This document shows, piece after piece, positions 2,131 to 63,362 of a DNA stretch of 64,000 nucleotides. The stretch's first letter is position 1. The number at the start of each line of letters is the position of its first letter. Under the pieces are notes generated by a model, which worked only from the letters and a program-made list of their open reading frames with translations, was not told the DNA's origin and did not search any database. Position numbers and translations under genes: made by a program. The stretch spans positions 474,964-538,963 of the forward strand of contig CAJFCJ010000026.1 of NCBI GenBank assembly GCA_904063045.1. The letters are read 5' to 3'. Origin of the DNA: Dimorphilus gyrociliatus. Taxonomy: Eukaryota > Animalia > Annelida.

Positions 2131-5100
2131 CACCACCTACACATTTACATTAATTCCCATTCACAAAATCAGATACATAGGCTTCTTGAATTTTTTAATA
2201 GTGTGGTTCCCGTTCCGAAAAGACGTATTTTCTTTAAAGAAAATTATATTTTTCAGTATGGTTTCTCTTGAAAAAAGTACAGAGATTTATTATTTTTCTA
2301 GTGTGGCGTCTGTTCCTTCCCGTCCAAAAATGAATTTCCACAATTTATTTTAATTTTAATTTTCTATATTTCGCTTGGTGCTTTCGTGAAAACAAAACTC
2401 ATTGTTTAGTTTTTCTTAAAAGTCTGTTAATGTGGTTCCCTTAAAAACAAAACAAATTAACAAACTAAGCTAAAAAGCATCTATTATTTAAGGAAGGAAA
2501 CCACTCTAATATAGATTTTTAAATGCACATTTCTAAAACTGTTTAAAGGTATCATCCTACAAAACATTTAAAAATTGCTCTAGTATGGTTCCCTTTTCTA
2601 CACGACGTGTTTAAATTTTTACTTTAAACCATTGACATGTAATGTGTATAGTTTGTTTTAGAAAATGGACGGGAACCACATGGGTTCACTGTGAAAATAT
2701 TTTTTCTATTAAAGAAGTAAAAATTTTTTATTGCACCAGGAACCACACTAAACCAGTATGGTTCCTGATCCAATAGAAAAGTATAAAAAATTTTTAATTC
2801 TTTAATAATTTTTACACATGTAGTATGGTGCTTGTTTTTTTAGAGTGGTTCCTTTTTAAAAGAGTACTCATTTAACAGTTTTTTTTTCTTATAAAAGATT
2901 TTTGTTGTTTGTTGATAACCTTCATATTCGAATAATTGTCATCTTGAGTTGGTTTTTTCGATAACGGCCTAAAATTTAAGATTCTTTAATTAGTATGGTT
3001 CCTTTTTTAACTATATCATATACAAAACAATAATAACAAATCATTTATAACAAAGCAAACTTTTTATCATAATGTCATAGTGTGCTGTTAAGGGAATAGA
3101 AACCACATTAAAGTAATATGTTTTATTTCTATCTAAAATTAAACATTTTAGAAAAATTTTTAAATGCATTGATCTGGGGACAGGACATGAACCATACTAG
3201 TAAATGTTTTTATTCCCTTGTGAAAAAATATTAACTTCAGTGTGTAGGGGGGGGGGACAGAAACCACATTAAAATACTTGTGAAAAATAAAAAGAAATTT
3301 AAAAAAGTTTTTTTATTTTGGACAGGAAGGGAACCATTTTAGAAAGAGATGTATAATTTAATAATTAAACAGACTGTTCATTATAAATTGAAATAAAAAA
3401 TCGAAAGATAAAAGGTTTTTAATGAAAAGAAAATTAAAATTTATTTTTGTATGGTTCCCTTTTTCACTATTCCCATAAGTAACAATCAAAACTTTGCTTT
3501 TTAGAATAACAGCGGGCATGGAGCCACACTATATATTTGATTTATATGCTTTTTTGACAGGGTAGTAACTACAGTTTTAAAAAAAAACGACGAGATTTTC
3601 AAGTAAAAATATTGAAACAATCGACGGGACAGAAACCACTTTAAAATAAAAAAATCTTCTGAAAAGGATTAAAATTTTTTGCAGCGGGAAAGGAACCACT
3701 CTACAATATAAAAACGGCTGTTTTTAAGGAACACATGTCCAAAAGCATTTTTAAAAGTTTTTTTAATAATTTCAAAAAGACATTTTTTTTTTGATGGATT
3801 GGAACCATACTTTCCAAAGTTTTTTGATCTTTGCGGAGAACCACACCAGAATCTTGAATCTTTGAGGAAAATCAAACTAGAATGTCTTCAAAGTGAATTT
3901 TTTAAGGAACGTGAACCACGCGTTTAAAAGTGCTTTCGATATTTAAGAACCACTCTATAGTTTATAATATATTTAAAGACGATGAGTTTCTTTAAGAGGC
4001 ATGAACCATACTTTTTAAACTGTTTTTTTAATTGATAACCACACTAAAATACTTTTTAATGACAAAGTTTTTTTTGAGAGACTGGAACCACACTTTTTAC
4101 TCAAACGTTTTGATACTTGAGGAGAATTCCAAGACCGCGTGACGGGAACCACACTTGACATTATTTGACCCTCAATTTTGTATTTTAATTAATTTTTTAT
4201 AAACTCTAGTCCGGTTTTAATTAATTTCTTTCTTTAGGAACAAGAACCACACTAAAAAGATTTGAATTTGAAAGGGTACCATCATTGTTTGAAAGAGCAA
4301 CCACACTAAAATATATTTTATTGCACATTGTAAAAAATTATTGTGTGGAACAAGAACCACATTTGATAAAAATTTTTCTCTTTCCGCTTATTAATTAATT
4401 GTTTTCCAAAAGAATGCTGTTTTTTTTAGTATGGCTCTATTTCCGGGAAAAATTTGAATTTTTTTAAAGAATGGAACCATACTAAATCGGATTTTGTAGG
4501 AATTGCTTATTTTCGACAAAAAATATTGCATGTTTGTCAAGCTCGTAAATCTTCTGAACAATAAACATCAACTGTTGAGCAACGTCATATTTCATTTTTC
4601 TTCCTTTTATCTATTTTTTATGATATTAAAAGAGAGAAAGTCTACAAGAAAATGTTTGATTCAGCTAATCTATAACGGTTTTTACATTTACGTTATACTA
4701 AAATCTTTCAAATTTTCAAATAATTAAAAAATGTGGTTCCTGTCCCTCGAAAAAAAATTATTGTATTTTTTATTTAGCAAATCATTTTTAATCTATTTTT
4801 TTTAGATTGGAACTAGCATGGAATCATTTTTCTCAGAAGATTACCGTTGGATTTAAAAAATTTGAACCGTTAAATTTAAAAATTTAAATTGTTTAGTCTG
4901 CTAGGAACCATACTACTATACATCCAAATTGTCAAAAATATTATTAAGGATAGGAACAGGACAGAAACCATATTAAAAACTACTTGTAACATTTTTGCTC
5001 TGTTTTTGAACAGGAACTATGCTTATTTTGGTCAATCAAGACTAATTCTAAAAATGTTTAAATAACAAATTAATATCTTTTCGTAAATCTCATTAGTGTG

Positions 5101-8100
5101 GTTCTTTTTTCGATCACCTAAAAGAAAAATTTTCAGGGTTAATAGTATGGTTCCTAGCCCTAACCTGAAAATATCCTAATCAAAAATTAGAAGTTGTTGG
5201 ATTAGTAGTTTTTTATAGGAACCACACTAAAAGGCAATTGAAGAAAAAGAGATTAGTTTTTTGAACCATTTTTTAAACAATTTTGTTGTTTGGAATAGGA
5301 ACCACCCTATAGTACATTTATAATTTATCAAAATTTTTAAAAAAGGAATCTAAGTAACCTGGTTCAAGTATTTTTTTATTTCAATTTTCTTTGCGTAACT
5401 AAAGTAGAGGAACCATATTAAATGTTGTCATAAATTTTCAAAATGGCTACTACCGTTTTAGAACACAGAATATTAAAATAATATTTTAACAAGATTTTTG
5501 AATGGAACACGAACCACACAAACTTTTTAAATTAACAAAAACTTGATTGAAATAACAAAAAAAGTAAACAATTACTTTAAAAATGTTAATAGTGTGGTTC
5601 TTGTTCCTAGAGATTTTTAAAAATTAAAAAAAAAAAAAAAATTTATCTCTTCAAATTTTGTCTAGTGTGGTTCCCCACTCCAAAAATATATAAACAAATC
5701 GATTTGAAGCGAAAATCACGATGTTCTAAAGTAATTCGTTTTCTACGAGTTATATCATTTACGAAATAATTGTTTATAGGGGAAAATGAAACAGGAACCA
5801 CTTTGAAAGAAGGAAATAATTTAGATAAGTGGTTAAGTATTTTAAATCCATAAAAAAAACTATTTCAGAGTAATGACAACAATGTTATAGAAATGTTGCA
5901 CAACATGTTTGTTATTTGTGGATGCCTGAAACCAGTCTAAATAATGTTAGAGAAACTCTTTTTATTTCCAATGTACAGCTTTTTAGAAAGAAGAGAACCA
6001 ACATTTTTTTCAGAGTAATAGTTTATAGTGTGCTGTTTTGAACAGGGAACCAGGCTACGAATATTTAATGAATATGATGATAAAATATATGGATGACAGA
6101 AACCATGTTGAACTTGACCTCTCTTTTTATATTATCGCTCAAGACACTTGGAAAAAGCTAGTATTTAAAAACACAAATTTTTATCGGAATAGAAACAACA
6201 TTATTTTTTATTTAGTATATTTTTATATTGCATGTAACCAGTCTAAAATATATATTTGTATTTCAGCATTACATGTAAATAATTTGTAACAAAAAAAACT
6301 GGTTTCTATTCCAGAATACTTTTTTTTTCGTTTTTTAAATAATTTTCACAGAAAATATAAACCATTTTTTGGAGGATTAGTTAAATAAGTATGGTGCCAT
6401 TCATTTATATATTTAGTTTAATTAAAGTATCATTATATGGTTTTTTTTGTGGAAGATGTATATTTTAAAAAAAAAATTTTTAGAACCAGTCTAAATTCTG
6501 TTTTTAAAAAAAATTTTATTAAATAAGTCCTAGTTTGCTCAGGATGCTTCTTCTTCAACCAGATTACAATAGAAGAATATATCAATGTTTCCAGGTCAAG
6601 GATACATTAAAAAGGAATTTTCTCTTAACCTGGTTAAACCTAATTTTAAAAACTTTTAAAATAACGGTTGAAATCTGGTTTCTAATCCAATTTTAAAAAA
6701 GGTCATTGTTATATAATGTTGTCATTTACAGTAGATAAAATTTTTTGGAATACTTTAGAAGGCTACAAAAACTATTTTGATCCTGGTCATTTTCCCTAAC
6801 CCTGTTAACAAAAACCAGTAAATTAGTTAGATTTAAAAATTAAAAAAAAAGTGGTTCGTATTCCATAATACAAATCAGAAGAAATAATGGAAAAAAAACC
6901 ATGTAATTAACCCTTCTTTATTATAAGGAATACGTAACCATACTACATAATTATTATAGGTGATTCATCATAGGAGTAAACTAATGCTTTTTCGAAATGT
7001 GGTTTTTTTTATAGTAGATATAAACCCAATTTTTTAATTTATTATTTTTTTTATTTATGATAATTTAAAGTTAAAAAGTGTCAAGGTCATTTAAAAAAGG
7101 ATCTATTATCAATAAATTGGAGGTAGCAAAAATTTATAAAACTATAAAATAATACATTCAGTGTGCTAATATGGACAGGTACCATGCTAAAATATTTCTG
7201 TTCAAAAAGAACCTTTATTTCATCCACTGACACATGGTTAGATAAAACTGACTAAAAAATATTCAAATAATTTTGTACAGAACTGGAACCAGTTTAACGG
7301 AAAATTTTTTTGAATTAGAAACAGAAACAGAATTAAATAAGGACTAGTCTTAAAATCTTTTTAAAAAGTTTACTATAACTTGGTATTTTCTACTTGTAGA
7401 TGAAAAATTTTTGTTTTCATCAGGAACCAGACGATAAACGTGAAAAACTGGTTCTGATTAGAAAGTTTACTTTTGAATTGAAAGACAGGAGCCATACCAA
7501 AAATATTTAAATTTGTTTTTTTTCAATATGGCCGTCAATACTTCTAATCCATTGTTATAATACTTTAATCTGGTTCTCCTTCCTTTCTGAAAATTCTCAC
7601 CAAATCAATCTGCTGTCAAGATAAAGGTCATGTTAAAGCTATGTTGTTTTAAGGAGAACATTTTGAGACGATCACTTGTTTTATTTAATGGGAACCAGTC
7701 TAATAAATTTTTTTAAATATTTTTTGTCTTTTAACATAAAAGAAATGACCTTTACATTGAGTTTTTAATTTTTTTAACAGATTCCAAGTTCCCTGTCTTT
7801 CATTTGAAGTTAATCAGGAAAATCCTTGACCTTTTTATTTCTCCATATGGGAAGCATTAGTGTGGTTCCCTTCTCTAAAGGTCAAGATTATCCAAGGTCA
7901 ATTATATTACTGTTGTTAGGTTTCTACACACAAAATTTACATTCCATTACCCAATTAGTATGGTTTCCTTTAAATATTTTATTAAAAACAACAATATTAT
8001 TCATTTTGAAATGTTACTTTTTTTTAACTTTACTTTTTAATGTGGTTTCTCCCTAAGTCACAATTCTCCCAAATTTCATTTAGTATGGTTAGTCTTCCAA

Positions 8101-8789
8101 GCAAACAAAATTGAAATTCATTTTAAAATATTTTTCTTAATAAAAATTATTCATCAAAATGATTAAAGATAGAGATGGGAACCAGACTAGAATAGTGATT
8201 ATTGTTTTGCTCATAGTGTAATGTAGATCCCTCGCCATTTCTCCAAATAGTCATTCTTTAAATAGTCTAGTATGGTTGCCAACCAAATTGAATTCATACA
8301 GAAATAAGAATATAAACATGGTTCCTCATAGTTAATAATTCTCAACCTAGTGTAAATCAATTGGAAATTATGAAAAATATTTCAGTTGGGTTTTAGACAG
8401 GAACCACACTATCATTATTTTTTTTTGTTTTTTAGAGATTGAAATAGTTATAATATTGTTTTTGTTTTAGTTTTCACATTTATGGATTGTTAAAATGGTT
8501 CCTTAGCCAATTTTAAAATGGGGAATGGATCCTGATTGGGACTGCCTTTGGCAAAAAAACTGCAATCACATATATTCATTAGTGACATTTTTTAGTTAAT
8601 AATTGTTTTTTTGTTGTTAGTGCAATAGTAGAATATTTTTCCCGTCATACTCTTAACAAGTAAGGGACAGAAACCACATTTTAAATTTGTTTACCTCCAT
8701 TAAAAATTTTAATAGGGAACCATACTACAAAAAATCACATATATTTGTTATCTAAAAAGATATCTCTGCCAGATTTTTAATATCTCACT

Positions 8790-9125
8790 TTTCATATTTT
8801 TGTAATGCTTTCACTCACATCTCAATGTCTTTTTCTCTGTTAAGCTGGAATAAGATTGCTCTCAGGATTCCATTTAATCAATTATAGAATCCTTCTACAT
8901 CATTATTAGTTCTAATTGCATTATGATACACTGACCATTACTTTGGTTCAAAACCAACAATTGCATTTGAAGTTAATAAGATGGTAAACAAAACCAGTGA
9001 AACTGGTATAATCTTTTCTGGTTTTATCACTCAAAAACTTCAATAAATCAACAAAACATTTTAAATATTTAAAACAACAAGAAAAAAGATATTTTCTCAC
9101 TTACTGCGGCGACTTGTATCCAATT
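8790..9125 (-). mobile_element. Internally deleted Mutator-like (MULE) remnant: 5' leader joined to transposase C-terminus
   Basis: Minus strand from 8937 reads WSVYHNAIRTNNDVEGFYN*LNG, the same RTNNDVEG motif as the 24886-25272 ORF. Segment 8985-9125 is homologous to 30370-30505. Confidence 0.75.
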
Positions 9126-11154
9126 CTTGGAATACATTGTATACAGTTAGCTTTTCAAGTGAAAGGAAAAAATAAATAAATGGAACAGGAACCATACTTT
9201 AATTTTTATCAAAAAACCTTGTTTTATTCATTAATGTCTGGTTAAGACAGAAAATATGTTATTAGTAAAGTTGTTGGAAAGAGGAGAACCACACTAAATC
9301 AAGTATTAAAAAATTTAAAGTTTTACTTTTCTAAAATTAATGGATTATATAATCCGGAAACCACACTAAAAAATTTTTAAATGTATTTCTGATTGGAAAG
9401 GGGAACCACGAGAGAATTTAACGTTTTTACACTTTTTCTACAGTTTAAAAATTTAATTTCAAAAAGTGTGGTTGCCTTTTTAAAATAAAACAGAGCTTTT
9501 TTTGAAAGTCTGTAGTGTGGTTCCAGTTCAAGAAAAGAAAATGTCTGTCTGAAAAAAGAAATTTTAGCATGGTTCCCTTTCAAAAAGCCTTCAAAAGTTT
9601 TAAAAAAAAAGAAAAACATACCAAAGAAATTTAGTGTGGCTCCTATCGCCTATGATATTATTTTTTAATAAAATATTTTCATTTGAAATTGTCATACAAT
9701 GTGGTTCCCCATTCAAACAAAACACAAAAAAGTATGCTGTTTTAAAAAAAACCATGCTATTGATATTCTGCTATTAAAAAAAGTTTGCTAAACGTTAAAT
9801 ATACATCTTAAAAAATATTGTTTTGAAGAAGAACCACCCTATTAAACACATGCTTAAAAAGCTATTGACAGGAAGAATAAGTTATTTTTTAGAAAAGTAG
9901 AAAAACATCTGTTAAAAAATAATGCATTCTAGAAGACAAAGAAATATTTTGTTTTGTGACAGGAACCATACTAATATACATTTGCTGCCCTTGCTCTGAA
10001 TGGGAAATATTGCTAATATATAAATTTGTTCTTTTAATTGAAACCAATCTAGAATGCTTTAATTAATAGTGTTTTGTGTAGAACTGGAACCATACTAGAA
10101 TTCACATATGAAAATTACCTAAAAATTCAGTCTCCTTTTTTTTACTTTAAATTTTATTTTAGACTGGTTCCTTCATGGAACAAAATCACATTTTTTTATA
10201 AATTATCAATTATATTTTGTTTTAAAAAGGAATAAATATTTTTCATTTAAAAAAGTATGGTTCCCTTTCCGGTAGATATTACTTTTTGAAATTGTTAGGA
10301 ATTTAATTTTTAGCATTATTTAAATGGTATGGTTCTTTTGTTGTTAAATCTTTTTCTTTTCTATATATTTAAGATTTATAGGACATTTTCAGAAAATACC
10401 TCTGGAATAGATATAAAACCATATTTTAAATAGAATAGGAACCATACTAGATTGTATTTTATATTGAGTTTCATTTTAAGAGGAACCACACTAAAAGTAA
10501 ATTTTAAATATTTGAAAAGTTTAAGTAGATGGTAAAGAAACCATACTACAACACAAATAAAAAACGGCAAAAAATCCACATTATTAATTATGTGTTTATT
10601 TAGAAAATCGACAGGAACCACTTTAATCAGTGACTGTAATCAAATTGGTATGCATATTGAAGGAACTGTTTTATAATTGCACACATTTAAAATTTGAATA
10701 TTTTCGCAGGGACAGTAACCATGCTACAACAAGATGGGACAGGAACCACATTAGAATGTTTGAAAAATGTATTCCTTTTTTTATCAAAAAAATAATGGAC
10801 ATTTTTTTGTTACGATAGTGACAAGAACCATATTATTGTCTTGGTTAGGATAGGAAAACCTTTCCCAATAAAAAAATTGTCCATCTTTTTTTAGTTTGGT
10901 TCCCGTTCAGATCTTTAATGCAGGAAAGTGTGCTTTTAGTATGGTTTCTCTTCAAACAATACAATAGATATGTAGTATGGTTACTGTGATGTTGTAAAAA
11001 AGCAGAAATCTTGTTAAATTTAGTGTGGTTCTTGTAAAAAAAGGAAGACATTTTAAAATATATTGTTTAAAGTATTCAAAATCTTTCACTTTGGAAAGAA
11101 GTTTACTTTGAAAGTCAAATTATTTTTAAATGCTGAATAGTTGCAAAAAAGTAT

Positions 11155-11580
11155 GCATGACAACTTTTACATAATTAAAGGTAGAAATCAACTGGGAAAA
11201 GAATTTTCCCATCAATGATGGATATTCATTCACTCTGAATGCTAAAACTTTAAAAAGTATCACTTGGGTGTGCAGTAAGAGGACCAAAAAACAAAGATGC
11301 CCTCCAAGAGTTTGCCAGTAAGCAAAAACATTTATCAAGGGGAAACTTGGAACATATTCATGGTAAAAATCATCATCTAACAACAGATTTGTAAAACTGA
11401 CATAGCTCAAAGATGAAAACAATGAGAGAATTTTTATATTTGGAAGCAACCATCAATTTAACTTTCTTATTCAGTCAAATCACTTGTTCTTTGATGGAAC
11501 ATTTAAAATTGTAAAAGATCCATTTTATCAGCTCTTATCTATACACAGCTTTATGACAAAAGATGGTGAAATGAAATATG
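11155..11580 (+). mobile_element. Degraded MULE transposase (FLYWCH + first catalytic Asp region)
   Basis: With frameshifts: IIKGRNQLGK..NDGYSFTLNAKTLKSITWVCSKRTKKQRCP (FLYWCH-like), then ERIFIFGSNHQFNFLIQSNHLFFDGTFKIVKDPFYQLLSIHSFMTKDGEMK. Confidence 0.85.
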
Positions 11581-12979
11581 AGAGCTGTATCAAAAATCTA
11601 TCCACAATCACAAATCCATGCATGTGTATTCTATTTCACAAAAGGTAATTTTATGTAAAATATTCAGTTTTTCTTTACAATGAATGTTCTTTCAAGTCTC
11701 TTGGCTACTCTGAATATGCAGAAAGGAGAGAACTGGACTATGATTTTGAACCCAAAATCAGACTTTCATCATTATCACTCACACTACCAGGACATTAATC
11801 ATGCTTGTTATTATTGCCACTAAATCTCAAAAATTTCTTTTTAGAATCCATTTTTGGAAATGATCTGTCACTGCTTACACTTGGTTTGTGTGAATAATCA
11901 TCTTTCAACACTTTTGTAATCACACTTTTTATTATTCAACAGTTTATCTATTTATTTAGAAAAAACTGGTAGAAGAAACATGATGAAATCTATTTCAAAT
12001 TCAGTACATTTGGTAACCTTTTTATTTTTTGCATTTTGATTGATACAAGAACCACACTAAAATATCTTATCACTAGGGCACAGTACTAAATGTATTTTGT
12101 GTGCTTTAGTGTGGTTCCCCTGCGAAACAAATTGTATATTAATTAAAATGTAGTATGGTTCTTTTCAGAACATTACCTATCAAAATTTATTTTTCACTTC
12201 AAAATTGTACAGTTATTAAAATATTTTCTAGTGTGGTTCTCTCTAGTATGGATCCACTACTTTAAATATTAATTAGTATGGTTGCTTTTCAGAGGGAGGA
12301 TGGGAATTTTAAAAGGTTTAACCATACTAGAGTTTATTTTATAGCATGGTTTTTTTTTTGGAAGAAAACTAAAAAAATTTTTAAAAAAGGTCAAGGTCAC
12401 TGAGAATATAGAGATCAATTTCAAAGGGGAAGGTAAAGTGAGAGTAATGCTATTATAAGATTAAACACATTTGAAGGATATTTTGAAAGGTTTCTAGGTT
12501 GTATTTCATAAATGATGATACAGATAAACTAGATTTGGAAAAGCACAAAAAACTTGTGTTTTAGTGTGGTTCCTGTCCAAACAAACTACTGAGTAATAAA
12601 GTAAATTAAAGTATTTTTATTGTTTGATTTTTAACCCTAGTGAATTATGTTTTATATAAAACAAATTAGTACAAAAATTTTGACCTTAACCTTTATTCTA
12701 ACCTTTCAACTTGCATTCTTAAAAGAAACTTTGCCTCTTTTTTTTTAAAACAGTTTTTGTTGAGTATCACCTTAAGGAATTTTTAATCAACTTCCGGTTT
12801 AATGAATTTTTAAAACAGCTTACAATATTCTAATGTTAATGGTACTGTAAACAAAAATTTGGAATATTTTACTAAAAACAATCTACCAGTTTACATTTAA
12901 AAGTCTTGTTTTGAAAAAATTTTTCTGTTGTGAAATTTTAAATTAAAATGAAAAAGTTTTTAGAAAAGTTTAAATCTAG

Positions 12980-15079: not shown

Positions 15080-17205
15080 CCGAACCACATTAAAATACTT
15101 GATTGCTTATTGAAAAAAGACGGGAAACCACATAACAATTTGTAAAAAGACTGGATACCAGTTAAAAACTTTTAAGAAAACACTGGTCATATATTTTACA
15201 TAAATTTGAATAAATTTGAATAATATAATAATTTTTTTTAGTGTTTAGGAACAAAATTTTGCAGAGAATTTTTTCAGGGTTACCTAACCTTTTCCATTAG
15301 CCCTAACCCTTAGAGCAGACCCTCCTAAGTACAAAATCAGTTGAAAATTATATATTGTAAAGAATGATGAAAAAAATCCAAAGAAAATCCAGGGAAACAT
15401 GCTGAAATGAGTATCCATCTGTCAAAGATGCTAACATTTGTTACTTTTTGTCCTCATTCTTTTTATTCAGCCAAAATCATTTATTTTCTTGTCAATACTA
15501 TTCTGTTTGATCATGTCTACAATTTTTTTTGGTTGTCATCATTCTTAGCTGGTTCCCCCCCCCCCTCTTCTCATAAAGAATGGAAGAGAAACTTTTTGTT
15601 TTTTTCCATCTCTATCTCTTGATAATTTGTTTAAAATTCTTTTTAATTTTAGAGATTGTTGAAATATGATATTTCAAATTTTCAACTGTCTATTCTATAT
15701 CCTTATGATGTTTTGGAGAAGAATAAATAATGATCATGAATATTCAAATTAGAAGTAATTAACAATGACTCGGCATTCTTTCAAGGTCAATCTTCTCACC
15801 TTGATATTGTGCTGAAAATTCGAATGAGAACCAGTCTAGAAACAGATCAGTTCTTCCAAATGATGATCGAATGAGAACCAGACTAGTTATATATGGACAC
15901 CGTAAATTTGTAATTAACGATTAAAATTGTTTGTCAGCTGCAAAATTAGTGTTTTTTGTATAAATTTTTATAGATAAAGAGTTAAATTGACATAATAATG
16001 AATTAAACTGGTTCTTGATCCGCGTAAATGTTTACTAAGGATAGAATTAAAAATATATTTTTTCAATAATTGACAGATAATCTGGTTCCTGTCTGAAATA
16101 TTATTCACTGCTAATAGGGTTAAAAACATAAAGTCTTCCTTGGTGGCTAAGCAAATATTGCAAATTAAATATATATTTAATATAAATCAGTATTTTGGAC
16201 GCCAAAATACTATTAATGTGGTTCTTATTTCAATATTCGAAAATTCAAAAACCTTCTAAATAAAATTGTTTTCTCTATTTCATATCTTTTTTCCTGAAGA
16301 TTTCTTTCATGTGTATCAGTTTTTTTAAAAAAAAACTGGTTCCTATTACGCTTTTTCTAAAAATTTTTAACTTGGAATTGGTGCGCCGCTTAAAAGACTG
16401 GTCTCTTATTCCTTTTTACTTTAATTAATTTGCCAAAAGTCAAACAAACAATGGATGTTTATTATGTAGAATGTAGTGGTAATGAATGACTTGTATGAAT
16501 ATGAAAAGGAAAAAAGATCGAGTGTAAAGTAACCAGTCTAATTAAAAAAAATTTTTTTTTAAAAATTCGATCCTTTTTTGGAACAGGAGCCATACTATAA
16601 AACCAAATTGAACATCAATTAACAAATACATGGACGATTGTTAATTTATGCATTTACTTTATTATTGACACAAAACGACCTTGACCCAAAAAAATATTTT
16701 TGACAACCTTCTCTCTGTCACCTGAATTTTGGTAGAATTACAGACTGGTTCCTGTTATGCATAAACATTATTAAATAATGTGTCATTTTTCAAAATTTAG
16801 ACTGGTAACCTTCACTCTGAACTAACTACATAATCAACTTTTGTTAAAACTTTCTATTAACCTAATTAAAACAAAAGATGCGGGGGAAGGGACCAGTCTA
16901 CGAGTTTTAATTTTGTAAAAAAACTTTTAGAACTTTTGCCTAAATTTAAAATCTATCTACAGTACTTTTCTTTTAAAACTAAAAATAGTTAGATGAGAAA
17001 GAAAGTTTTTTTTTAAAATTTATTTTATTATTATGCGGAATAGGAACCACACTATTTACAAGTTAAAATTTTTACTCTAAACAAATTATATATTTAATAT
17101 AGTTTCAAAATTAACAATTAATAAATAAAAATTAATTTGTGTAATTCAATAGTCTGGTTCCGGTTTTTCACAAAAAAAATTTTTTAAATTTTAGTGTGGT
17201 TCCTT
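15080..17205. repeat. GGAACCA-N2-CTA motif array, block B (AACCAGTCTA/AACCAGACTA variant enriched)
   Basis: About 20 copies, e.g. 15828, 15875, 16530, 16743, 16890, 17043, 17152, 17193. Confidence 0.85.
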
Positions 17206-39065: not shown

Positions 39066-39099
39066 AAGTTCCATTCAAATATGATCTTCTTCTACTTCA

Positions 39100-43499: not shown

Positions 43500-43619
43500 G
43501 TTTATAAAAAACTTTGTTAAAGTTATTGTAGATTTAGTCTGGTTCCGTACCCGTTAAAGAATATTTTGCAGTAATTGAGCAGAAAAGTCTAGGATTGAAG
43601 AAATTACATGTTGACTTCA

Positions 43620-44000
43620 TGATATCTGTAAAGGTGATATTTACTATGCAAAAACATACATTCATTTAATTTTGCTTAATATTACAGAAATGATAGATAA
43701 TAAGTGTTCATCATGCAAAAGTTTGAGTGACAGATATTATCAGTTGTAATCAATGATGATTCCATTGTAAAAGCTGCTCTGACTTGAAGTATTTTCATAA
43801 AGAGTAAACATAAACAAAAATCATAACAAAAGGAAAAGCCTTATTGTCATGCAGACATCAAGTCATCTGGAAGAGCAATTGCTGAAGATTTTCTAATTGA
43901 TTAAAATGAAAGTGAAAATAGCTTATCAAAATTGGAAAATCTGAGGAGATTTGCTAAAATTAATCAATGAACCGCCAGTATTTGGCATCTGTTTTTGAAT
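43620..44000 (+). mobile_element. Possible highly decayed PHD-MULE remnant
   Basis: CSSCKS, SSGRAIAEDFL and LSKLENLRRFA weakly parallel FLCNIC, SSGKCLAEEVL and IPSMDNCARLA of the 25324-26406 ORF. Confidence 0.35.
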
Positions 44001-45900
44001 AAGATGTAACAAGTTTGACATGCATTTTTTCTATATTGTTTGTTCCATTGTTAATTCTATAATGCAACATCTGTTTTGGTCAAAGAATTATACTTTGTGC
44101 GAACTAAAAGCCTTTCTAGAATTCAAAACATCTAATTCCACTAAATAAGATCTTTCTTAGGTTTGGGTTATTAATTCCATCAAAAAGTGGTTTTTTCTAA
44201 TATTTCACTATTCTAATTCCTTTAAAATAAGATCCATTTTCTTTAGATGGGTTCGGGTTTCAGTTTTATTATTTCATTCATCTGGAAATTTCTGGAATTA
44301 GAACCATGCTATAGTAAGTCGACGGGGGTATATATTGTGGCTCCATCTGTTGTACAGAAAATTTAGAGTGTACATTATTTTTGAAGTTGTTCTTTTCTTT
44401 TGAAAAGATAATATTCCAGTTTTAGAATGAACTAACCTCTAAAATTAACCTCGACCTTTAATCTTAAAAAGCTATTAATATAACTAAATAGACTGGTTCC
44501 TAATCCATAAAGTATATGAAATTTATATATATTATAATCTTCTTAGAATGGTTGTTGTTCCATTAAAAAGTATTTTAAAAACAGTTTAACCTTTTGACCT
44601 TTCCAAATTAAAAATAGAAAATCAATTGGCAGACAGATTTATACAAAGTGGCAAAATATTGAAATGAAGGTTAAAGTAAAGGTTTATTAAAATTAATTAC
44701 AGCAAGGTGAAGGTTGAACACAACCATCAATAAACTTACATTTACATTATATTAATTTAAAGTGACCTTGTTTGACCTTTTGAAGACAACTTGAACCACT
44801 TTTAATATTTTTTACTGGACTGGTTTCTAATTTGGAAAAGATAATTCCTTTTATTAAAAATTTGTATCAATGTGAAGGCCATTAGAAAAAAAAACGAAAA
44901 TTATTTGAATTTCAAAAAAAGAAATCTGGTTCTTATTCCGCAGTAAGTCTATTCCATTTTTTACCGATGTATGAGTTTCTTTCATCAGACGGCGCTTTGT
45001 ATATAAGTTGAGCAAATGTTTCAAAAAAATTCAAAACTTTAAACATTAGAAAAGTGAACAAATGATTAAAGGACAGAAACCAGTTTAATTTACATAATGA
45101 AGTATGAAATGAATCCTTATCCTTTTTTCTAAAAAAGTGGTTAAAAAAAAACAATTTGAGAAGAACACGAACCATACTATAGTCATTTTTGTCTATTTTT
45201 TTCACCCTTTCTACTTGTCAATTAGAAAAGTAAAAATCAGACTGGTTCCTATTCATTAAAATATCTTTTAAAGAAAACCTACACTATGATCCTAAACAAA
45301 CAAATAATAAAAAATTTATATTTATACTGATATAAATAATTTTTTGTGTGGAATAGGGAACCAGTTTTTTCTTTATCGAGATTAACAAGTTTAAAAAATC
45401 TTATATTACATATTATAATTACTTTAAGAATTATCATTTAGTTGACCTTTACCCTTGATTTACTTTCTAGTTGAGTTTTGGATGTCTTCTATTACAACAA
45501 AATTTTAGAGTGCTTCATGAATATTCAAAACCAAACTATTTATTAAAGAGAACCCGTCGAATTAGGGTTCTTGAAGGTGAAGGTTGGAAATTGAAAGTAA
45601 AGTCACATTGTATAATTAATATTCTACAATTCCTTTTTAGCGGAAAAGGAACCAGACTATATAAAATTTGAATTAGTGTAAAACGAACGTCATTTTAAAA
45701 AAATCCATCATTTAATATAGTTAGACTGGTTTCTATTTTATTTTAAAAATTAGACTGGTTTGATCTTTTGGAAGGAATCTTCAAGACAAACTGAACACCT
45801 TAGATTCTGTTTGATTAAAATATGGCTGAATATACTTATGACAAACTTGAAATACGAAGCTTGAATAATTATAAATTCAACAACAAAAAGATATTGTATA

Positions 45901-45914: not shown

Positions 45915-46152
45915 ACAATAGGTATTCCTGTATCTGTGACAAATAGTAATTAAATGATATTGTTTAAAATTTATTTTGTGTAGGAAGAATCATTTGTTAC
46001 TGATGGAACAGATGTAAGAGGGGAACAAAATACCCGTACGCCGTATCTGTTTTTAAGGGCATTTTTACATCCTAATAAAATTTTAGAACAAAAGAGATAG
46101 AAGAGTATTTAAGTAAGAACTGAATGATGATTGTTGTTGAATGAATGAATGA

Positions 46153-51414: not shown

Positions 51415-54400
51415 TTTCTAGACTGGTTTTCAGAAAAAAGATTCTTATATACAAAAAAAGAAAAATCATAGTTTAATATTAGTATGGTTCCCCTTCCTTT
51501 TTAATTTGAAATAGTTGTACACTTGAAATTTTTTAAACAAAGCGGAACTAGGTACCATATTTTAATATACATGATTCAAAATCATTGAAAACCAATAATT
51601 TATTCAATATTTTCCAGAAAAGATCTATTTTTAAAATATTTGATTTAAGTTTAGTATGGTTTCCCCTTCCGTCGCTAAATCATATTCTATAACGGATTTC
51701 AATTAGCCAAGTTTTAAAAGAGAACCACATTTAATATGGTTTCCGTCTATCCGACAAAAATTCATATTTTAAAATGTTTCCCGGAAATAGTTTCACCTCC
51801 CAAAAAATTGCTATCAAAAGGTATTTTAGTCTGGTTCCTCTCTTCCCTTTAAAAGTGCACAAAATGTGTACAAGTAATTTTTCTAGTGTGGTTCCCCTAC
51901 CAAATAAAAGAACTCTTTACTTTTAACATTTCAATCTGTATTTTTAAAAAATATTTTAGCATGGTTTCTTTATATTTTCTGTACTTTATAAACTGTAGTG
52001 TGGTTCCCCTCTGATACAAAATATACTATTATTAGTGTCTAATGTGGTTCAAATTTTAATTTGTAAATATAATAAAATGCTTTAAAGCCTAAAATGTTTC
52101 TTAATATGGTTTTCTCCAAGTAAATTCAATTACAATACCCGCAAAAGAGTCTGTTATACCATTAAAACCAGTTTATAAAACCATAAATCTGGGAGGAAAA
52201 CTCTAAAACAAAATGGAACAAGGTACCATACTTTCTAAATTCTCACATATAGTGTGGTTTTCCTTCCTGAAACAAAACACATTTTTAATAGAATGTATTA
52301 TACTTTTCATTTAAAACAAGATATTTCAAAAAATATTCTGTTAGTCTTGTAACAAGATAGTTATTAACCTTTTTGTGAATACACACCGGAAGTTAAAAAC
52401 TGGGTCAACTCATTCCTCTCTTTACCAGTTTGTTTTTAAAAAACATTCAACAAATGCTGAAAACTTTTTTATAATAATTTCCATCCATTAATTTTTGGAG
52501 TGTGGTTCTTGTTCCTTCCCTATAAAATATACATTAAAATACTCTGTCCTAGAATTTTTGCATCAAGATAAAAGTGTGGTTTATGATTCCTCTTTCCAAA
52601 AATTTAACGACAAAACAGCTGTGGACATTTTCCTGAAATATGTTTCCTGTCCCATTTAATCAATAGATAACAGATATGCTTAATCTTTTAAAAGACAAAA
52701 CATATTGAAAATATAGTGTGGTTCCTCTCCGTTGCACATAAACAGATTTTTAGTCAAATCTAATCCTCTCCGAATTTTTAACCCAGTAAAATATTTACAA
52801 GCTAATATAATGTGGTTCCTGTCTGCCCTTAAAATACACTTTAGAAATTAGGCTACTATTTTCGAAACAAAATGGATTCCAGAGTGGTTCTTGTCCAAAT
52901 AAAAAGTAAATACATTTGGAGTTGTATGCATAATTTTTGTAAAAATTTTATTTCGATTATTATAGTGTGGTTCCCATCCACCACAAAAAATCTGTTTCAA
53001 AATGTTTGGTAGTTTTTTTTTTCATGAGACAGAAAACCTTTAAAGGTATTTTAGTGTGTTTTAAACCACAATACATTTTTTACTAATAACAAAAATGTAA
53101 CCTGGGTTCCATCGCTCCCCCTCCTTTAGTAATTAATAATAAAAAGTTAAAAATTTGATATAGTGTGGTTCCTTTCCCTTAAAAAACGACAAATTTTGTA
53201 AAACGCCATCTACCGCCTTCCTTCAATACCAGTAGTATGGTTAACACATTTTTAAATGTAATTCTACGCAAATACCTTTTTGAAATATCTTTTCTATCCC
53301 AACAGCATTACATTAAAAGTAATATTTTAGTCTGGTTCTCAAGTTGTAATAAAATTTAAAAATGTATTCTAAGCTCATTAAAAATATGTTCAAGAGTGGT
53401 TCCTCTCAATGTCAAATTGTACCGCACCAAGATGTGGTTCCTGTCCCCTATAAAAAATGCATTATTCACATAATTTTCCAAGTGTGGTTTCGTATTTTAA
53501 AAAAATAAATATAGATAAATATTACATTAATTAGACAGTACCACACTACTATTTGAATTTTATTGTTCACAAGAAAAAATGCTTTCTAAAAATTAATCAT
53601 ATGTGCATGTTTAATTGCAATAGGAACCACATTAGTACAGTTTCTAAACAAAACTATTTACTGGTATAATTTGAAATTGTATTTCTTTTTGGAGAAAGGA
53701 ACCATGCTATTTTTGTTTTTTTTGATAAATTACTAAAATTTTTTTGTGAGGGACAGAAACCATACTAACACACTTTGTAGATATTTTTATTTATACTAAA
53801 ATATTGGTGTACAAGTGTGTTTTATTTGAAGTAGGGTAACCACACTAAAACAAATTTTTAGAAAGAAAATAATGTTTGAAACATGATTTATATAATTTTT
53901 AAAAAAGCTGAGAAGCCTATTTTTTATTAAAATTGGAAATCTTCATCTTTGAATATTCTGCCAGTATTTTTAGAAAATTTTTAATATTTAACTTTATTGA
54001 TAATATATCAGCATACATTTTAAAATGTATTGCTTTTTGTGGACAGGAACCATACTTAACCATTTTCTAAATATCATGTTTTTGGAAAGCAAAGAATACA
54101 AGATTATCTTTATTATGTATTGTTATTAAGAAGAATATACAAGTGGAAAGAAAACACATTAGAAGATATTTTTAAAAAGATCATGTTCCTTTTAAAGAAG
54201 AAAAATAATGTAAAAGTCTTCAATACCTCTTTCTGATTTTTTATGATAGAAACCAAAATGTATGAATATCTGGAATGTATTTTAAAATGTATTTTAAAGG
54301 TGTTGTTTTCAAGAAAAAATAATGGCATAAAATTTTAAAAGTTGTTAGTTTTTTTTGGAGGACAGGAACCATACTATAAAAATTTTTCAAATTAGTTGTC

Positions 54401-57400
54401 ACACCAGAATAAATTTTTTTTATATCCTGTTTTTAATTTTAAAATTTTTTAATTGTTTTGCGCTGAAAACACAGAAGAATACATTTTTAAATGTGTTTTC
54501 TTCAGAGAACAGAAACCAGATTAAAACCCATTTTGTACATTATAAAATCTGGACAGGCACCATACTAGAGTACATTTAAACAGTATTCTTTTTAAAAGGA
54601 AAAGGATAATAGATTTTGAGGAAGAAAGAAACCACACTATAATGCTTTTTATATAAGTAGCTTTGAAGGATAAAATACCTGGAAACATTTTTAGATGTGT
54701 TTAACACTTTTCCAAAAATATATTTAAATATATTATAGAATATCAGCTTACAACTTAAAATGTTTTTTTTTCTCCTATGGGACAGGTACCACACTAGAAA
54801 ACTTTCAACATTTTTGATTTTAAAGAAAAATTCTAGAGCGCGCTGGAAAATGTGGTTTATGTGGTTTTGAACAAGAACCACCCTAGATTACTTTTAAAAT
54901 GTGTCTCTACAAAAATATCTGGAAATATTCTACAATGTATGTTTTTTTGTAAAAAGAACAAGAACAACTCTAGAAAATAATTCAAAAAATATTTTAGTAT
55001 GGTTCATGTCACACCAGAAAAAATTATAAAAAAAGTATCCTGAAAACAGGTAATTAAATTAAGAAAGATTTTTTTTAAACGGGTATCTGTTCCTTCCGAA
55101 AAAACACTTATTGCACTTAAAAAGCTATATTTTTGTAAATTTAAAAAAATAAAATAATTCCAAATGGAACAAATGCCTTTTTTTTGTAGAAATAAAATGT
55201 AAATTAATATCTTAAATTTAATATAGACAAGGATTCTGTTTTGAAAGGGGAGCCACACAAGAATACATGTAATTAACACTTTCATATCTCAATAACTTAA
55301 CCTTTCAAATTCATATAATATTCTCATTTTTGACCTTGACCTTCAGAAAGACATTAGCATAAAAATCTAAGATGTGAAAAACTAATGACCTGTTAACATT
55401 TCAGATATGGTCCTTTTTTATATTGGAAAGGGGAATCACACTATAAAACTCTCTATGGTCTTTCATTTCATACATTATTCTTGAAAAAATGAGATGATAT
55501 TTTCTTGATGAGCAGAAAGGAACCATACTAACACTAAATTTTTAATGAAAAAACATAACCATACTATGAGAAACCATACTATTTTTAAAAAATTTGGAGG
55601 ATATAATTTTTTTTTGGTTCGATGAGAGATCAGTATCCACATTTGGCAGAAATTGTCAAACTTTTAAATATTTTAGTATGGTGCCATGCATGTGATCTGA
55701 TTCATTAAAAAATGTTGTAAAAATGACTGTAGTGTGGTTCTTGTCCTTTTAAAAAAACCTAATTTAATTTTTAATGATTTAAGTTTTTTTTGAGGGAATA
55801 CTTATAGTATGGTTCTTGTTCCAACAAAAAAAATTCAATGCTATTAGTTGTTAATTAATTTTAAAAGTGATTTCTTTTTAAAATTGTGTCAATAATATTG
55901 TCCAATCTGACCAGGAAACCACACTAGAAAATAATGAAGGTGTCTAATTTTTTCTACCTAAATGTACTTTTATATCAAACAAATTATATTCCTTTTCCCT
56001 TCAATAAGACAACTATAACAAGAGTCCTATGAAAAACGGGTAAGCCTTTAAAGGTGAAGGACGACAGATCATATAAGTTACAACCAAATTTTAAATTAGG
56101 ATTTAATGTGGTTCCCATTCAGTAAAATTCTTTAATTTTTAAAGTATTTTTGAAATTGATCACTTCAATGAATTTTTAAATATATATATATATATATATA
56201 TAACTAAATGGTTTAAAAATATATTCTAGTGTGGTCTATGTCTCACCAAAGAATATGTTTTATGCATACTTATACCTCTTTTCTTAACAAATATTTTTCT
56301 AGTGTGGTTCTTGTTGCTTTCCAAAAAATATTACATTTTAAAACAATATACTTGTATAATTAATACATGAGAAGAAAAAATTTGGAAAGTACTCAATTTC
56401 ATCAGGATAGAATACCAGAATATTTTTTAAAAAGAATTTTGAGGATTGGGAAACATTGAAATAAAAAGGATTTTAGCGTGGTTCGTGTCACATTTAAATC
56501 ACATTTTGAAATGTATCCTAGTAAAGAAGATAGTAGGGTTTCCAACAAAGGTGGTCTAATATACTTTTATTTCAGAATCAATAAATTAAAAATTTTTTGC
56601 TAGACTGGTTCCCTACGATTAATAAACCTCCTCCATTGAAATCTAGGGTGGTTTATGTCCTAAACAAAGAAAACCTAAGATATTTTCACTTCTTTTTCAT
56701 ACATTGTTTGTAAAAAAATACATTTTTCAGAAATGTTCTACAATGGTATTTTAAAAAAAAAACACATTCTAGTATGGTTTCTTTTTAAATAATTCACTAG
56801 AGAATAGAGGCAATACTGTTTTATTAGAGTGGTATCCTGTTTTTTTGAAAATATTTTGATAAAGTAGTTGTCTCCAAAAATTAGTATGGTTTTTATACAT
56901 CAAGTGTATCATAGTCTTCTTTCCAGAATGGAATACTTTATTAGAGTGGTACCTTGCTTTATTTGAAAATATATTTTTACAAACAGTAGCAGCCTGTTTT
57001 TTTTTAAGTGATATCTTCTTTTATATGAAAATATTTTTTGATGTTAAAACAATTGTTGCTATTATTTTTGAAAAGAATACAACTATGAACAAAAATTAGA
57101 ACATGTGGTTGTATTCTAGTATGGTTCTTGTTCCCACCCAAAAAACACAAATAAAAAAACTTTTCCCCAGCAGCCTTCAGTTTCAAAATAATCCATTTTT
57201 TAAATATGTTCTATTGTGTTTCTAGTCAAAACAAAAGATTATATATTTACTTTTGAAGAACCTAAAAATACTAAATATATTGAAATATATATTAGTGTGG
57301 TTCCCTTTATTTGTCTATAACCTCAAAATGTCTGTATTCCAGACCATTTATTAAAAGATTTTTTAAATGTAGAGTAGGTAAGAAATCTTTGGTGTAACAT

Positions 57401-58035
57401 TAGAAAGAAATGTTTGAAAAGAATACTAAAACATATATTAAAATACCTTTTGTTTGGGGACTTGGTAGCCACACTAGAATAAACAGATTTCAAAATGTTC
57501 TTTGTTCCAGAGAATACTAGAGTTCATTTTCAAATGAGTTTGCTTTAAAAAATTGTTTTTTAAATAAAAGATTTTTTAAGAATACATTCTAAGGGAACCA
57601 TACTAGAACATTTTTTAAATGTCTACTGCGTGGAATAGGAACCACATTAGAAGAATTTTAAGAGAGTTTTTTCATTTTACATCCAGCTAGCTCAGGCTTC
57701 AACATTATGAAATTTATTTGAATATTTTCATGTTTTTCAGTTAATGCTATACTACTCAAGATATGTTTTTGAAAAAAAAACTTTTAATTGGGTTTCCATC
57801 TGTCTGTTATCTATTTTTTCCCTTTTTTTCTTTGAAGAAATAAGCAAACAGCCAGAGACTTTTTATCAATATGATATTCTATTTTATTATCTTATTGAAG
57901 TTTTGTTGAATCTTCAACATAATTAAACAATCAAACAAAATTTTTGGCTATGTGAAACATTATAAACAATAATCTTGTATTATTTCACACCCAAACAAGA
58001 CACTGAACAAATTTATGTTCTAGAGTGGTTCCCGT
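51415..58035. repeat. GGAACCA-N2-CTA motif array, block G (alternating ~2-kb polarity domains)
   Basis: About 60 copies by manual listing. Confidence 0.9.
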
Positions 58036-60085: not shown

Positions 60086-60119
60086 TTAAAAAAATATTTA
60101 AAATGTAATTTGCTTGAAA

Positions 60120-63100
60120 AAGGAACCACACTAGGATTGTTTGCACTTGGTTTTCTTTTTAATAAAATAGTACATTTTCACTTTTGTATAAAATGTACAT
60201 CTTTTTCAAATTTTTTGTTTAGAAAAATGAAGCAAACTAAAACAAGATTATTAATATGTTGCTTTAAAATTTAAGAATAATTCATTTTGTGTGTGAAAAG
60301 GGAACCACACTAGCACAGATTTTTAAAAAAATGACTTTTGTTTGAATGGTAAGTAATACATGGATTCAATTTAGAAAATGTTTTGATTGATTGGGGAAAA
60401 GGAACCATACCAGAAATTATTTTTTGATGTTTTAAAAAACGAAATTTTTAAGTAAATGAATTGTCAGGGAAGGGAACCATACTAGAAGATAATTTTTATG
60501 TATTTTTTTTGAAAAAATGCTTTGTTTTGAAAGAAACCACTCTACCTTCTAAAGAAATATGGGAATAAGTATTTCAATGAAAATGTCAGAAATTGTCAAT
60601 TACACTAGTTAAACTGTTTTAAAAAAAATTCTATACACAATTGTGTAATTTATTTTTTGAAACAAAATTTTCTCAATAGTCCAGCCATTTATTGTGAAAA
60701 AACAATGTTTTTAATGGAATAGAAACCATGCTAAATAATTTAAGGTGATTGTAGACTAAGCTGAAATAATTGCAGCATAGAGTAATAGAATACATTTGAA
60801 TTAATTTTTGTAATGATGGTAAATTATGCAAGAAAACTACACTAGCATTCAGGTTTAATACATTTCATATATGGAAAGAAAGAAGAACCATACTATGATA
60901 TGGTTTGAGAAAAAGTCATATTGAAAGACATTTTAAATTCATAATAAATCTTTTTTGTTTTGTTTTGATGATTTCAAATGTTGTGCTTTTAAAGTAAAAC
61001 ATTCAAAAATGTTTGAGAGGGATAGGAACCACACTAGAACACACAACTATAAAATACTAACTTTTTTTAAGAAAAAAAAAATACTAGAATACATTTTCAA
61101 GTGTTTTTCTTATGGAAGGGAACCAGATTAGTCAGGAAAATCCTATTAGAATATCAAAAAAGGAAGCCATACCATTATTTAATGAAAATATTATTTTTTA
61201 GGGGGGAGGGGGACAGGAACCAGCATAAAACATTTTTGTATGTATTTCATATTTAAAATACGTTTGCTTAGCCCGTGAGTGGAATAACTTTATTATATAT
61301 TTTTAATAGTCAAAGTTTGGGAAAAGAAAACCACATTAAAATACATGTGAAAATGTAATTTTTAGTGGGAAAAATTTCTTGAATACAATTCAAATACTGG
61401 AATATATTACAGGAACCATACTAAAATACAATTTATATATGTTTTGTTTGGTTTGTAGTAGAATGTTAGAGAAATATTATTAATATTAGTTTTTTAAAGT
61501 ATTTCTTTTTGGGACAAGGAACCACACTATAACATATTTTTAAATGTTTTGGTAAGGAGATAAAGGTATACTTAAAGACATTTCAAAATGTGTTTTTTGT
61601 GTGGTTTAAGACGGGACGGGAACCGTATTACAATATATTTTTCTCAAATTTAATCAAAGAAAATGAATAAACCTGCTTTGTTTTGAAGACGAACCATACT
61701 ACAATTGATTTTTATGCATTTACTGTAGAATTTTTTCAAACCACACTAGAATACATTGTATTATGTTCTCTGTTTGGTAGGGGAACCATACTACGAAACA
61801 TTTTAAAATATGTTTTGTTTGAGAGGGAAGTTTTGGTTTAAAAGACACCATACAAATGTGTATCAAAAATGTGCTCTGTTTTTTGGAAGGGAACCACACT
61901 ATAACATATTTTTTAATATGTTTTGCATTCAAGTAGTTTTGATTGCATGTATAAAAAAAATGCAGGAAAATGTATTTAAATGTTTTTTTTTTGAAAGATA
62001 AGAATACTGCAATACATTGCTTTGTTAGGAAAGGGAACCACACTATGTTATATATCATTCTGTTTAAACTATAGTGTATTCCACTAATAGTACTGTTTTC
62101 TTTCATAGCCTTGTCATAAATTGACAAGCTATATATGGTGGTGTACTGCTAGGGGGACCATACTAAAGTATATTCAAAATACCCTTTTGTCTTCAAAGGA
62201 GAGTTATATTAAAACACATTATTTTCTTAGGCTGAGGGTTTGCAAAAAGAGATAACTAAATTTCAAGGAATTTTAAAATAAATTTGAGAGTGGAACAGGA
62301 ACCATATTAAAAAGGCTTGGGTATGGGAGAACATTTTGGACTGAAAAATATAAAAAACATGAAGGATTTATTCTTATGAGAGCGACCATACTTGAAGACA
62401 ATTAAAATCTATTGTTTAGTTTTTAAAGGAAACCATACTATTATACCATTAAGGATGAACCACTCTAAAAATACAATTGTAAAAATTTTTATTTTAATAG
62501 AAACAAAAACATACAAGAACATTTTTGAAAATGTACTTTTGATTTTCAAGGAAACCATACTAAACCTTTTAAGAACATATTCAATGGATTTGAAATGTGT
62601 ATTTGGGGGAACGGAAACCACGCTAAAACAAATAAGGATGTTTTTTTAAAAGAAACTTTACTAATGAATGTTTTGTCTTGATAAAAAAAGTATAGCAATA
62701 GATACTTTTAAAATGTGTTTTGTATTTGAAGGGAACCACACTAAACTTTATTTGGCAGAGGAACAACAATAGAATACATTTAATTTATTACTTTTAAGGA
62801 AACCATACTAGAATATAAAAAAAATTCTTTTGGAGAACCACACTAGAGCAAATTGTTATAATAGGCTGCTTTGAAAAGAGTGTTTTTAAGAAAAAAGGAA
62901 ACCACTCTAAAGTACATTTTTAAATGTGTTCTTTTTCCGGTGTTAATGACGGATTAGGTAGTGAATCAGCAATGGAAGCGGGGTCACTTTCTCTGCAAAA
63001 TTATCACATTATTATCATTTCCTACAACAGATTTTCTAGTATGGTTCCTGTCATAATAAAAACACATTGTACATGCATTTTAGTATGATTTCTTTAAGAT

Positions 63101-63362
63101 AAAAAGAAGAATTCTCAAAATGATTTAATTTATGATAGATATGTATTTTTTCGTGGGAAGGGAACCTTACTAGAATACAATTTAAATGTATTTTTTTGTG
63201 CGGAAAGGAAACCATACTAGACAGACACTTTCAATGTTTGTTTTTTTTTGTTTTTTCGGAACCACACTAAAACAGTTTTTGAATCTATTTTTTGCGCGGA
63301 ACGGAAACCATATTAGAAAATAGTTAAAGTCTACTTTTTAATGGATAGGGAACCATACTAGA
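60120..63362 (+). repeat. GGAACCA-N2-CTA motif array, block H (almost fully unidirectional)
   Basis: About 38 copies; only one clear reverse copy (~63040). Confidence 0.9.

Follow-up and report, generated by a model that had tools for sequence, protein, structure and literature searches.

The question raised by this locus is what could keep some 280 copies of one short motif in DNA in which little else is shared between one copy and the next. The locus is a stretch of 64,000 nucleotides from the small marine annelid Dimorphilus gyrociliatus (hereafter, the window), which corresponds to about 475-539 kb of the 865,716-bp record CAJFCJ010000026.1 (assembly GCA_904063045.1) and lies mid-scaffold. 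It is AT-rich eukaryotic DNA, with a guanine plus cytosine (GC) content of 26-33% throughout, except in one gene. Eight blocks within it carry oriented copies of a short element, RG-AACCA-(B)(A)-YTA, the positions of which are numbered here from 0 to 11. This motif field is genuine, stands on robust statistics and is unusual. The reading that we favour, with a probability of roughly 0.42, is that the eight blocks represent a locus-restricted field of sites held by selection, which may act together as a multivalent platform for a sequence-specific factor.

The motif is far more abundant than chance would give. The exact string GRAACCANNYTA has 139 matches in the window, both strands included, whereas dinucleotide-preserving shuffles give an expectation of 0.91 and a maximum of 3 in 100 shuffles. 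A position weight matrix (PWM) spanning -6 to +15, iterated to convergence and set at a threshold that allows about 3 false positives per window, recovers 284 oriented sites. When blocks are defined by splitting at site gaps above 1.5 kb, exactly eight are obtained, with 32.3 kb in all, and they hold 284 of the 284 sites; the remaining ~29 kb of the window has none, and none falls within a gene. An earlier note on this DNA, made from the letters alone, had estimated by hand 250-300 copies in eight blocks of about 31 kb and had proposed the comparison with shuffled DNA, and these counts agree well with it. The spacing between neighbouring sites is broad (median 84.5 bp, interquartile range 57-130); distances under about 40 bp are rare, and the 284 sites show no sharp spacing period. 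The orientation is strongly clustered, with 70 runs against 133 +/- 8 expected. In short, the field is a cluster of numerous independent units, each with its orientation, within an AT-rich domain that is poor in genes. A 10-bp phasing of A/T tracts is absent from the arrays.

The manner in which the motif varies bears on selection. The AACCA core and the final TA had been described before as almost invariant, with the variation gathered at positions 7-8 and 0-1, and with the caution that a part of this pattern could come from the way in which copies are detected. The bias was controlled by seeding on one half of the motif and reading the half left free. A left seed (positions 0-6) gives 187 matches, with 16 expected by chance, and in these T10 is present in 96%, A11 in 86% and a pyrimidine at position 9 in about 100%, while at position 7 C accounts for only 44% and A does not occur, and position 12 is no different from background. 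A right seed (positions 5-11) returns A2, A3 and C4 at about 100% after chance correction, and G0 and G1 at about 75%; an outer seed returns equally high values for C4, C5 and A6. The raw, chance-diluted retention is about 0.8 for A2, A3, C4, C5 and A6 and 0.86 for T10, and the first five reach about 100% consensus once corrected for chance, against a retention of about 0-0.3 at positions -2, -1, 7 and 12. A likelihood-ratio test on the bias-free seeds, comparing one common retention with position-specific retention, rejects uniform decay at p values of about 1e-74 to 1e-103. The described pattern is thus borne out, and the conservation remains sharply unequal between adjacent positions when detection bias is removed. 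Since near-invariant positions stand beside near-random ones under half-motif seeding, a loss of register driven by insertions and deletions cannot explain the pattern. Additionally, the G/C positions of the core are retained in DNA of 27% GC, and a near-invariant core under such strong AT pressure argues for selection on each of the ~280 sites. The core carries about 17 bits of information, to which the flanks add about 4 bits, and the variant with GA at positions 0-1 accounts for 48 of the 284 sites.

The surroundings of the core are far less constant. A weak flank consensus is present, with a T-run at -17 to -11, GGRACA at -6 to -1 and RAAtAcaTTTTTAAA at +12 to +24, the latter being composed of RAA at +12 to +14 followed by a TATA-like ATTTTTAAA at about +16 to +24, and the stretch from about -30 to +40 around the motif has a very low GC. 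These are essentially the weak flanks that the earlier note had described, and its statement that the spacers do not align holds as well. The best pairwise local score in the 40 nt upstream or downstream of the sites is 27-28, close to the 24-25 of Markov- or column-shuffled controls, and a clear similar partner exists for only 8-10 of the 284 units. Self-comparison by blastn gives no long homology within or between blocks, its matches being limited to a few pairs of units (40-56 bp) and a single inverted duplication of 42 bp, and Tandem Repeats Finder (TRF) detects in the blocks one 47-bp mini-array of 2.3 copies. Two other kinds of structure were considered and rejected. A subfamily structure is absent, as variants are unclustered among neighbours and show no long-range covariation with the flanks, which fits independent sites under one constraint. 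A downstream hairpin or palindrome (ACATTT..AAATGT) is likewise absent, as the longest stems at +12 to +46 (mean 4.5) are distributed like those of random or upstream windows (4.3-4.6), and stems of at least 6 occur in 14% against 14-19%.

One rival explanation is that the field is a neutral relic, namely an aged minisatellite, the core conservation of which is only apparent and arises through detection bias, mutational heterogeneity that sets low-complexity A/T tracts apart from a complex core, or ongoing duplication. The weak unit consensus of about 45-47 bp with its few young duplicates, and the orientation runs, do indicate tandem duplication, and an ungapped alignment anchored on the motif overstates the fall-off of conservation with distance. 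A weak consensus on both sides of the core would also suit a decayed repeat unit. The half-seed tests, however, are free of detection bias and still place near-invariant positions beside near-random ones, and the G/C positions are kept against strong AT pressure. Furthermore, neutral decay was simulated with a 47-bp satellite filling an equal length, under the same PWM threshold and with retention fitted to the flanks. The observed flank majority frequency of 0.525 leaves about 5-17 detectable sites, and not 284; to obtain about 284 simulated sites, a retention of about 0.65 is required, which means flanks about 77% identical to the consensus. Ordinary satellites with the same 12-mer also look different, as a metagenome scan for motif pairs found 37 loci, all of them unrelated ordinary tandem repeats with alignable units. 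The neutral relic is strongly disfavoured on these grounds and we regard it as highly improbable.

The copy number of the arrays bears on the same point. In public DNA and RNA runs compared with window positions 42001-48000, the DNA word depth over the arrays is about 180-340, which is the single-copy baseline, and short-read DNA contigs, as long as 2 kb, show no differences from the arrays. The single-copy depth and the difference-free contigs show that the arrays are no assembly artefact and that the spacers are unique in the genome, and the depth further means that the arrays are neither a satellite nor recent copies of a transposable element. Nor is the field a tandem satellite or minisatellite of the ordinary kind: its units are unalignable, its decay is non-uniform and it is not high-copy. 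An aged satellite with uniform substitution was what the earlier note had set against its own proposal, and alignment, likelihood-ratio test and simulation all find otherwise. A few low-depth DNA contigs (6-11 against ~180) join 43327 to 45232, 44476 to 44914 and 44946 to 45571; these joins may be assembler artefacts and not real deletions, as their matching sides are only 21-33 nt.

Transposons offer another possible origin. The genome paper lists Mariner and Mutator-like elements (MULEs) as the only DNA transposons of the species, with transposable elements making up 4.87% (PMC7854359). A tblastn search with window fragments finds MULE remnants at 8872-8937, 11145-11585, 24886-26406, 29719-29952, 32209-32592 and 38860-38931, which are old and mutually diverged (~40-60% amino acid identity), alongside the mariner remnant of block 3 (Table 1). 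It is conceivable that the field is transposon-derived, consisting of old subterminal or foldback arrays of transposase sites, from a MULE or other DNA transposon, that were kept for a transposase, possibly a domesticated one. The remnants in and between the blocks speak for such an origin; the orientation domains at 51.7-53.4 kb (-) and 53.6-55.0 kb (+) look like foldback arms, and one 42-bp inverted repeat bears the motif. In En/Spm, Ac and foldback elements, multiple subterminal binding motifs are carried in both orientations.

Several details of the locus weigh against this origin. The MULE remnants had been placed within most blocks by the earlier note, but they lie in or beside only 3 of the 8. 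The arrays on either side of the MULE copy at 24.9-26.4 kb share one orientation, so that this copy and the mariner remnant sit inside a single '+' run as if inserted into a pre-existing array, and no terminal inverted repeat is found around the copy. The putative foldback arms have no sequence similarity by self-blastn, the single-copy state of the array DNA leaves no recent copies, and an old dead element would lose its motif as fast as its spacers, which differs from the pattern here. A further comparison comes from related elements. A word-indexed protein search with a 359-aa MULE fragment gave no match; an exhaustive HMMER search with the same fragment found its closest relatives, four of them on other scaffolds of GCA_904063045.1. 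These more intact FLYWCH-MULE genes with 10-kb flanks served as control loci (L038, L039, L040 and L042; 101.9 kb, GC 27-32%), and they contain 0 exact motif matches and 9 weak PWM hits, a modest excess over the ~5 allowed by chance. The motif is therefore not general to the AT-rich DNA of this genome, and FLYWCH-MULE elements do not include the arrays. A transposon origin is, in our view, decidedly unlikely, and the candidate of expanded subterminal PHD-FLYWCH-MULE sites, which the earlier note had listed, is disfavoured by both the more intact loci and the orientation of the arrays around the window copy. In L042 (10001-19028; CAJFCJ010000059.1), one 2396-aa gene model combines NACHT, LRR-type, FLYWCH and MULE transposase domain hits, through either a true fusion or domestication or the joining of gene models across an inserted transposon.

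The reading that we favour, a multivalent recognition platform, accommodates these observations in the following way. The field would go back to a unit of about 45 bp that was long ago duplicated locally in tandem, as suggested by the orientation runs, the spacing floor of ~40-45 bp, the weak ~45-47-bp unit consensus and the few young duplicates. Afterwards, the spacers would have drifted to randomness, while transposons inserted and decayed. Purifying selection would have kept the AACCA and YTA sub-sites, as these would be read by a sequence-specific DNA-binding factor. The recognition element would be the core, accompanied by a weaker footprint that spans about 28 bp (upstream GGRACA; downstream A-rich then T-rich), and its two fixed sub-sites around a variable dinucleotide resemble, by analogy, the sites of tandem zinc-finger or two-domain binders. 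Given the MULE- and mariner-rich region, a transposase-derived binder is plausible. The field would concentrate this factor over a gene-free intergenic domain rich in transposon remnants and would end at promoters and genes. The most likely role would be in marking or organising chromatin or chromosome behaviour, for example by silencing, as a boundary, or in recruitment of the pairing or centromere type. We infer the protein binding and this role from the field, its non-neutral conservation, its unique single-copy spacers and its restriction to the locus within the sampled DNA. The earlier note had proposed a dense platform for one factor on the basis of site-like variation, and this part gains from the half-motif seeds, the simulation, the unique spacers and the locus restriction, as opposed to its MULE candidate; its remaining candidates are a specifier of heterochromatin or of piRNA clusters, a centromere box and a recruitment motif. 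If a chromatin or chromosome factor is indeed recruited, it would represent a new domain specifier, defined by sequence, in Spiralia, where functional genetics of chromatin is almost lacking.

Several points weigh against the platform. By itself, it leaves unexplained the ~40-bp floor, the oriented flanks and the AT-richness from -30 to +40, all of which also fit small promoter units. The sample consists of the window plus 102 kb of loci that were all picked through MULE genes, and selection is inferred from the sequence of one genome.

The promoter alternative deserves consideration here. Each motif could be the upstream promoter of a tiny short-RNA unit, and the field a cluster of mini-genes like the nematode type-I Piwi-interacting RNA (piRNA) loci, with the spacers as the RNAs; we consider this rather unlikely. 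Nematode type-I piRNA clusters contain thousands of loci, each with its own upstream motif, transcribed by RNA polymerase II into a ~28-nt precursor, and the architecture of the field is similar (PMC6436959). The motif is oriented and its flanks are asymmetric, with the T-run upstream and the A-rich then TATA-like stretch downstream; these flanks with their TATA-like element, the very low GC around the motif and the spacing floor fit promoter units better than a mere platform, and the hard floor of about 40-45 bp in the spacing suggests that each unit requires its own body. The field also lies in a transposon-remnant region and avoids genes, in a species that reportedly lacks 5-methylcytosine, so that other transposon control would be required (PMC11292947). 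On the other hand, no initiator (pyrimidine-purine, YR) or 5' U signal is seen at a fixed offset, with less than 0.1 bit beyond about +25 or before about -17, and this is also true of isolated sites. The contigs of run X4 (from the RNA search; kind not recorded) cover the ADAM-like gene from 45981 and a high-copy repeat, and have zero depth over 42.0-43.4 and 44.4-45.8 kb of the arrays. This argues against long transcripts, and is weak evidence, as such contigs are blind to RNAs of ~30 nt. The more specific proposal of an annelid counterpart of piRNA clusters, independent of Nematoda, in which each GGAACCAYACTA would be an autonomous mini-promoter yielding one short RNA per spacer, appears unlikely to us. 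To our knowledge, per-locus piRNA promoters are known only in nematodes. Were small-RNA mini-genes present, they would form the first per-locus piRNA-type promoter system outside nematodes, in a species reportedly without DNA methylation.

The coordinates of the blocks and of the associated features are collected in Table 1.

Table 1. Motif blocks and associated features, in window coordinates.
Feature	Coordinates	Strand	Description
Block 1	2199..12573	both strands	102 PWM sites (58 +, 44 -), ~1 per 102 bp; short alternating orientation runs
Block 2	15081..17203	both strands	17 sites (8 +, 9 -)
Block 3	22747..24997	+	16 sites (14 +); mariner transposase remnant 23958-24446 within
Block 4	26996..29186	+	20 sites (16 +); oriented as block 3, across the decayed FLYWCH-MULE copy
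Block 5	37677..37813	+	3 sites; adjoins 21-bp tandem array
Block 6	40311..45733	mixed	33 sites (24 +); motif-free gap 42191-43334 with two E-boxes; high-copy repeat ~43.6-44.2 kb; ends ~250 bp upstream of the RNA-supported ADAM-like gene start (45981)
Block 7	51480..58032	mixed	58 sites in orientation domains: 51732-53430 (-, 17 sites), 53623-54961 (+, 13 sites), 56104-57293 (-, 12 sites)
Block 8	60122..63360	+	35 sites (34 +); densest, 1 per 93 bp; holds the one 47-bp mini-array that TRF detects (63141-63246); its end lies just upstream of a gene-like region
Local inverted duplication	43316..43499		42-bp arms, 95% identical, one motif copy each
Decayed FLYWCH-MULE transposase copy	24886..26406	-	FLYWCH domain, then MULE-type N-terminal part, in a disrupted frame; flanked by blocks 3 and 4
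Intact ADAM/reprolysin-like gene	45981..48258	+	Open reading frame (ORF) 46153-48258; RNA contigs

Young rearrangements are few in the field, and the inverted duplication belongs to them. In block 6, the segment 43600-44200 is a non-coding repeat with a DNA word depth of up to ~12000 and no ORF above 43 aa, which is present in the RNA contigs; it is probably a high-copy element inserted in the block, resembling a miniature inverted-repeat transposable element (MITE) or a short interspersed nuclear element (SINE).

The palindromic E-box RTCACGTGAY has 18 sites in the window, against ~0.4 expected, located at 476-1128, 13289-13403, 19480, 34147-34616, 40036, 42580, 42720, 51121 and 58188. Those at 476-1128, 13289-13403, 40036, 51121 and 58188 bound the arrays, and a 1.1-kb motif-free gap surrounds those at 42580 and 42720. 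The ADAM-like gene, the kinase gene and the E-box sites all mark ends of the arrays, as had been observed earlier. The E-box islands at block edges and gaps are likely promoter elements, some of them without an obvious gene. NCBI gene calls in the stretch matching window positions 36-58 kb comprise the ADAM-like and kinase genes only, and searches with Rfam (gathering threshold) and ARAGORN returned no RNA genes in the window or in the four control loci. The 700-aa ORF of the ADAM/reprolysin-like gene contains no intron, and the RNA contigs of this gene begin at about 45981; DNA contigs at 90-95% identity to it suggest a close paralogue or a divergent allele.

Other words are repeated in the window as well. 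The dispersed word AAAACTGGTA(W)TTAT has 15 sites against ~1 expected, on both strands and both in and outside the blocks, including those at 9000, 22686, 23157, 27579, 29005, 29276, 34108 and 39503, and it may derive from a short element that has decayed. Tandem arrays whose periods are 20, 21 and 36 bp are located at 31190-31527, 32865-32955, 36480-36686 and 37813-38025. They have in common the word AATATTCAT (69 copies in the window) and occupy the motif-free 29-40 kb stretch, alongside MULE remnants.

Dense fields of a single motif in otherwise unique DNA are rare, and the cases that are understood, such as nematode piRNA promoters, C. elegans pairing centres and insulator clusters, have revealed a dedicated factor and a chromosome-scale function. 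The signal in D. gyrociliatus is unusually clean, with ~17 core bits, ~280 sites and single-copy spacers, in a compact 74-Mb genome for which assay for transposase-accessible chromatin sequencing (ATAC-seq), cap analysis of gene expression (CAGE) and RNA-seq exist, the ATAC-seq and CAGE data under PRJEB37657. In our literature search, no paper describing the motif was found, and its strings appeared only as primers and similar; a term search of the genome and methylome papers gave no mention of such an element.

Among known binding sites, the RUNX site AACCACA fits only about 40-50% of the sites (those with C at position 7) and leaves YTA unexplained. The tRNA B-box (compared with GGTTCC-TGTCC, on the reverse strand), Drosophila Motif 1 (..CACACTR) and the Grainyhead site AACCGGTT do not explain YTA either, and we know of none of these four that forms such arrays. 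The CENP-B box and other transposase-derived sites are alike in being a conserved protein-binding box in repeated DNA, as the field would be if a protein binds it. However, CENP-B boxes sit in homogeneous, high-copy, alignable monomers, whereas the spacers of the field are unique and single-copy. The Su(Hw) cluster of the gypsy insulator, with 12 copies in ~350 bp inside a retrotransposon, shares the degenerate ~12-bp motif copies, the AT-rich spacers and the joint action as a platform that is predicted for the field; the latter differs in that ~280 copies, separated by 45-130-bp spacers, are spread across 32 kb of intergenic DNA of the host.

Two nematode systems are likewise similar in layout. 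The Ruby piRNA clusters also have many oriented units with a short shared motif in AT-rich, unalignable and gene-poor DNA (PMC6436959). Their motif core is GTTTC, in contrast to AACCA..YTA here, and GTTTC arises in the field just by chance, when the GAAACCA variant is read on the opposite strand. Their small RNAs begin with a 5' U at a YRNT initiator set about 40 nt from the motif, and each locus yields a short capped precursor. Compared with those clusters, the field has a tighter unit spacing, strong orientation runs, an annelid host and no 5'-U/YRNT base signal seen at a fixed offset. In the C. elegans pairing centres, clustered 11/12-bp motifs, made up of TTGG and TG sub-sites with a variable gap, recruit the zinc-finger proteins ZIM/HIM-8 and do not regulate genes one by one (PMC11605055). 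That motif, TTGG...TG, differs from AACCA..YTA. We know of no annelid that uses pairing centres. Here the motif is dense in the window and has 0 exact matches in the 102 kb from four other scaffolds to which the comparison extends. The pairing centres of ZIM-1/2/3 and HIM-8 resemble the field in their short bipartite motif, in the many copies gathered in one region and in the multivalent recruitment platform that such copies form, and that the field may form.

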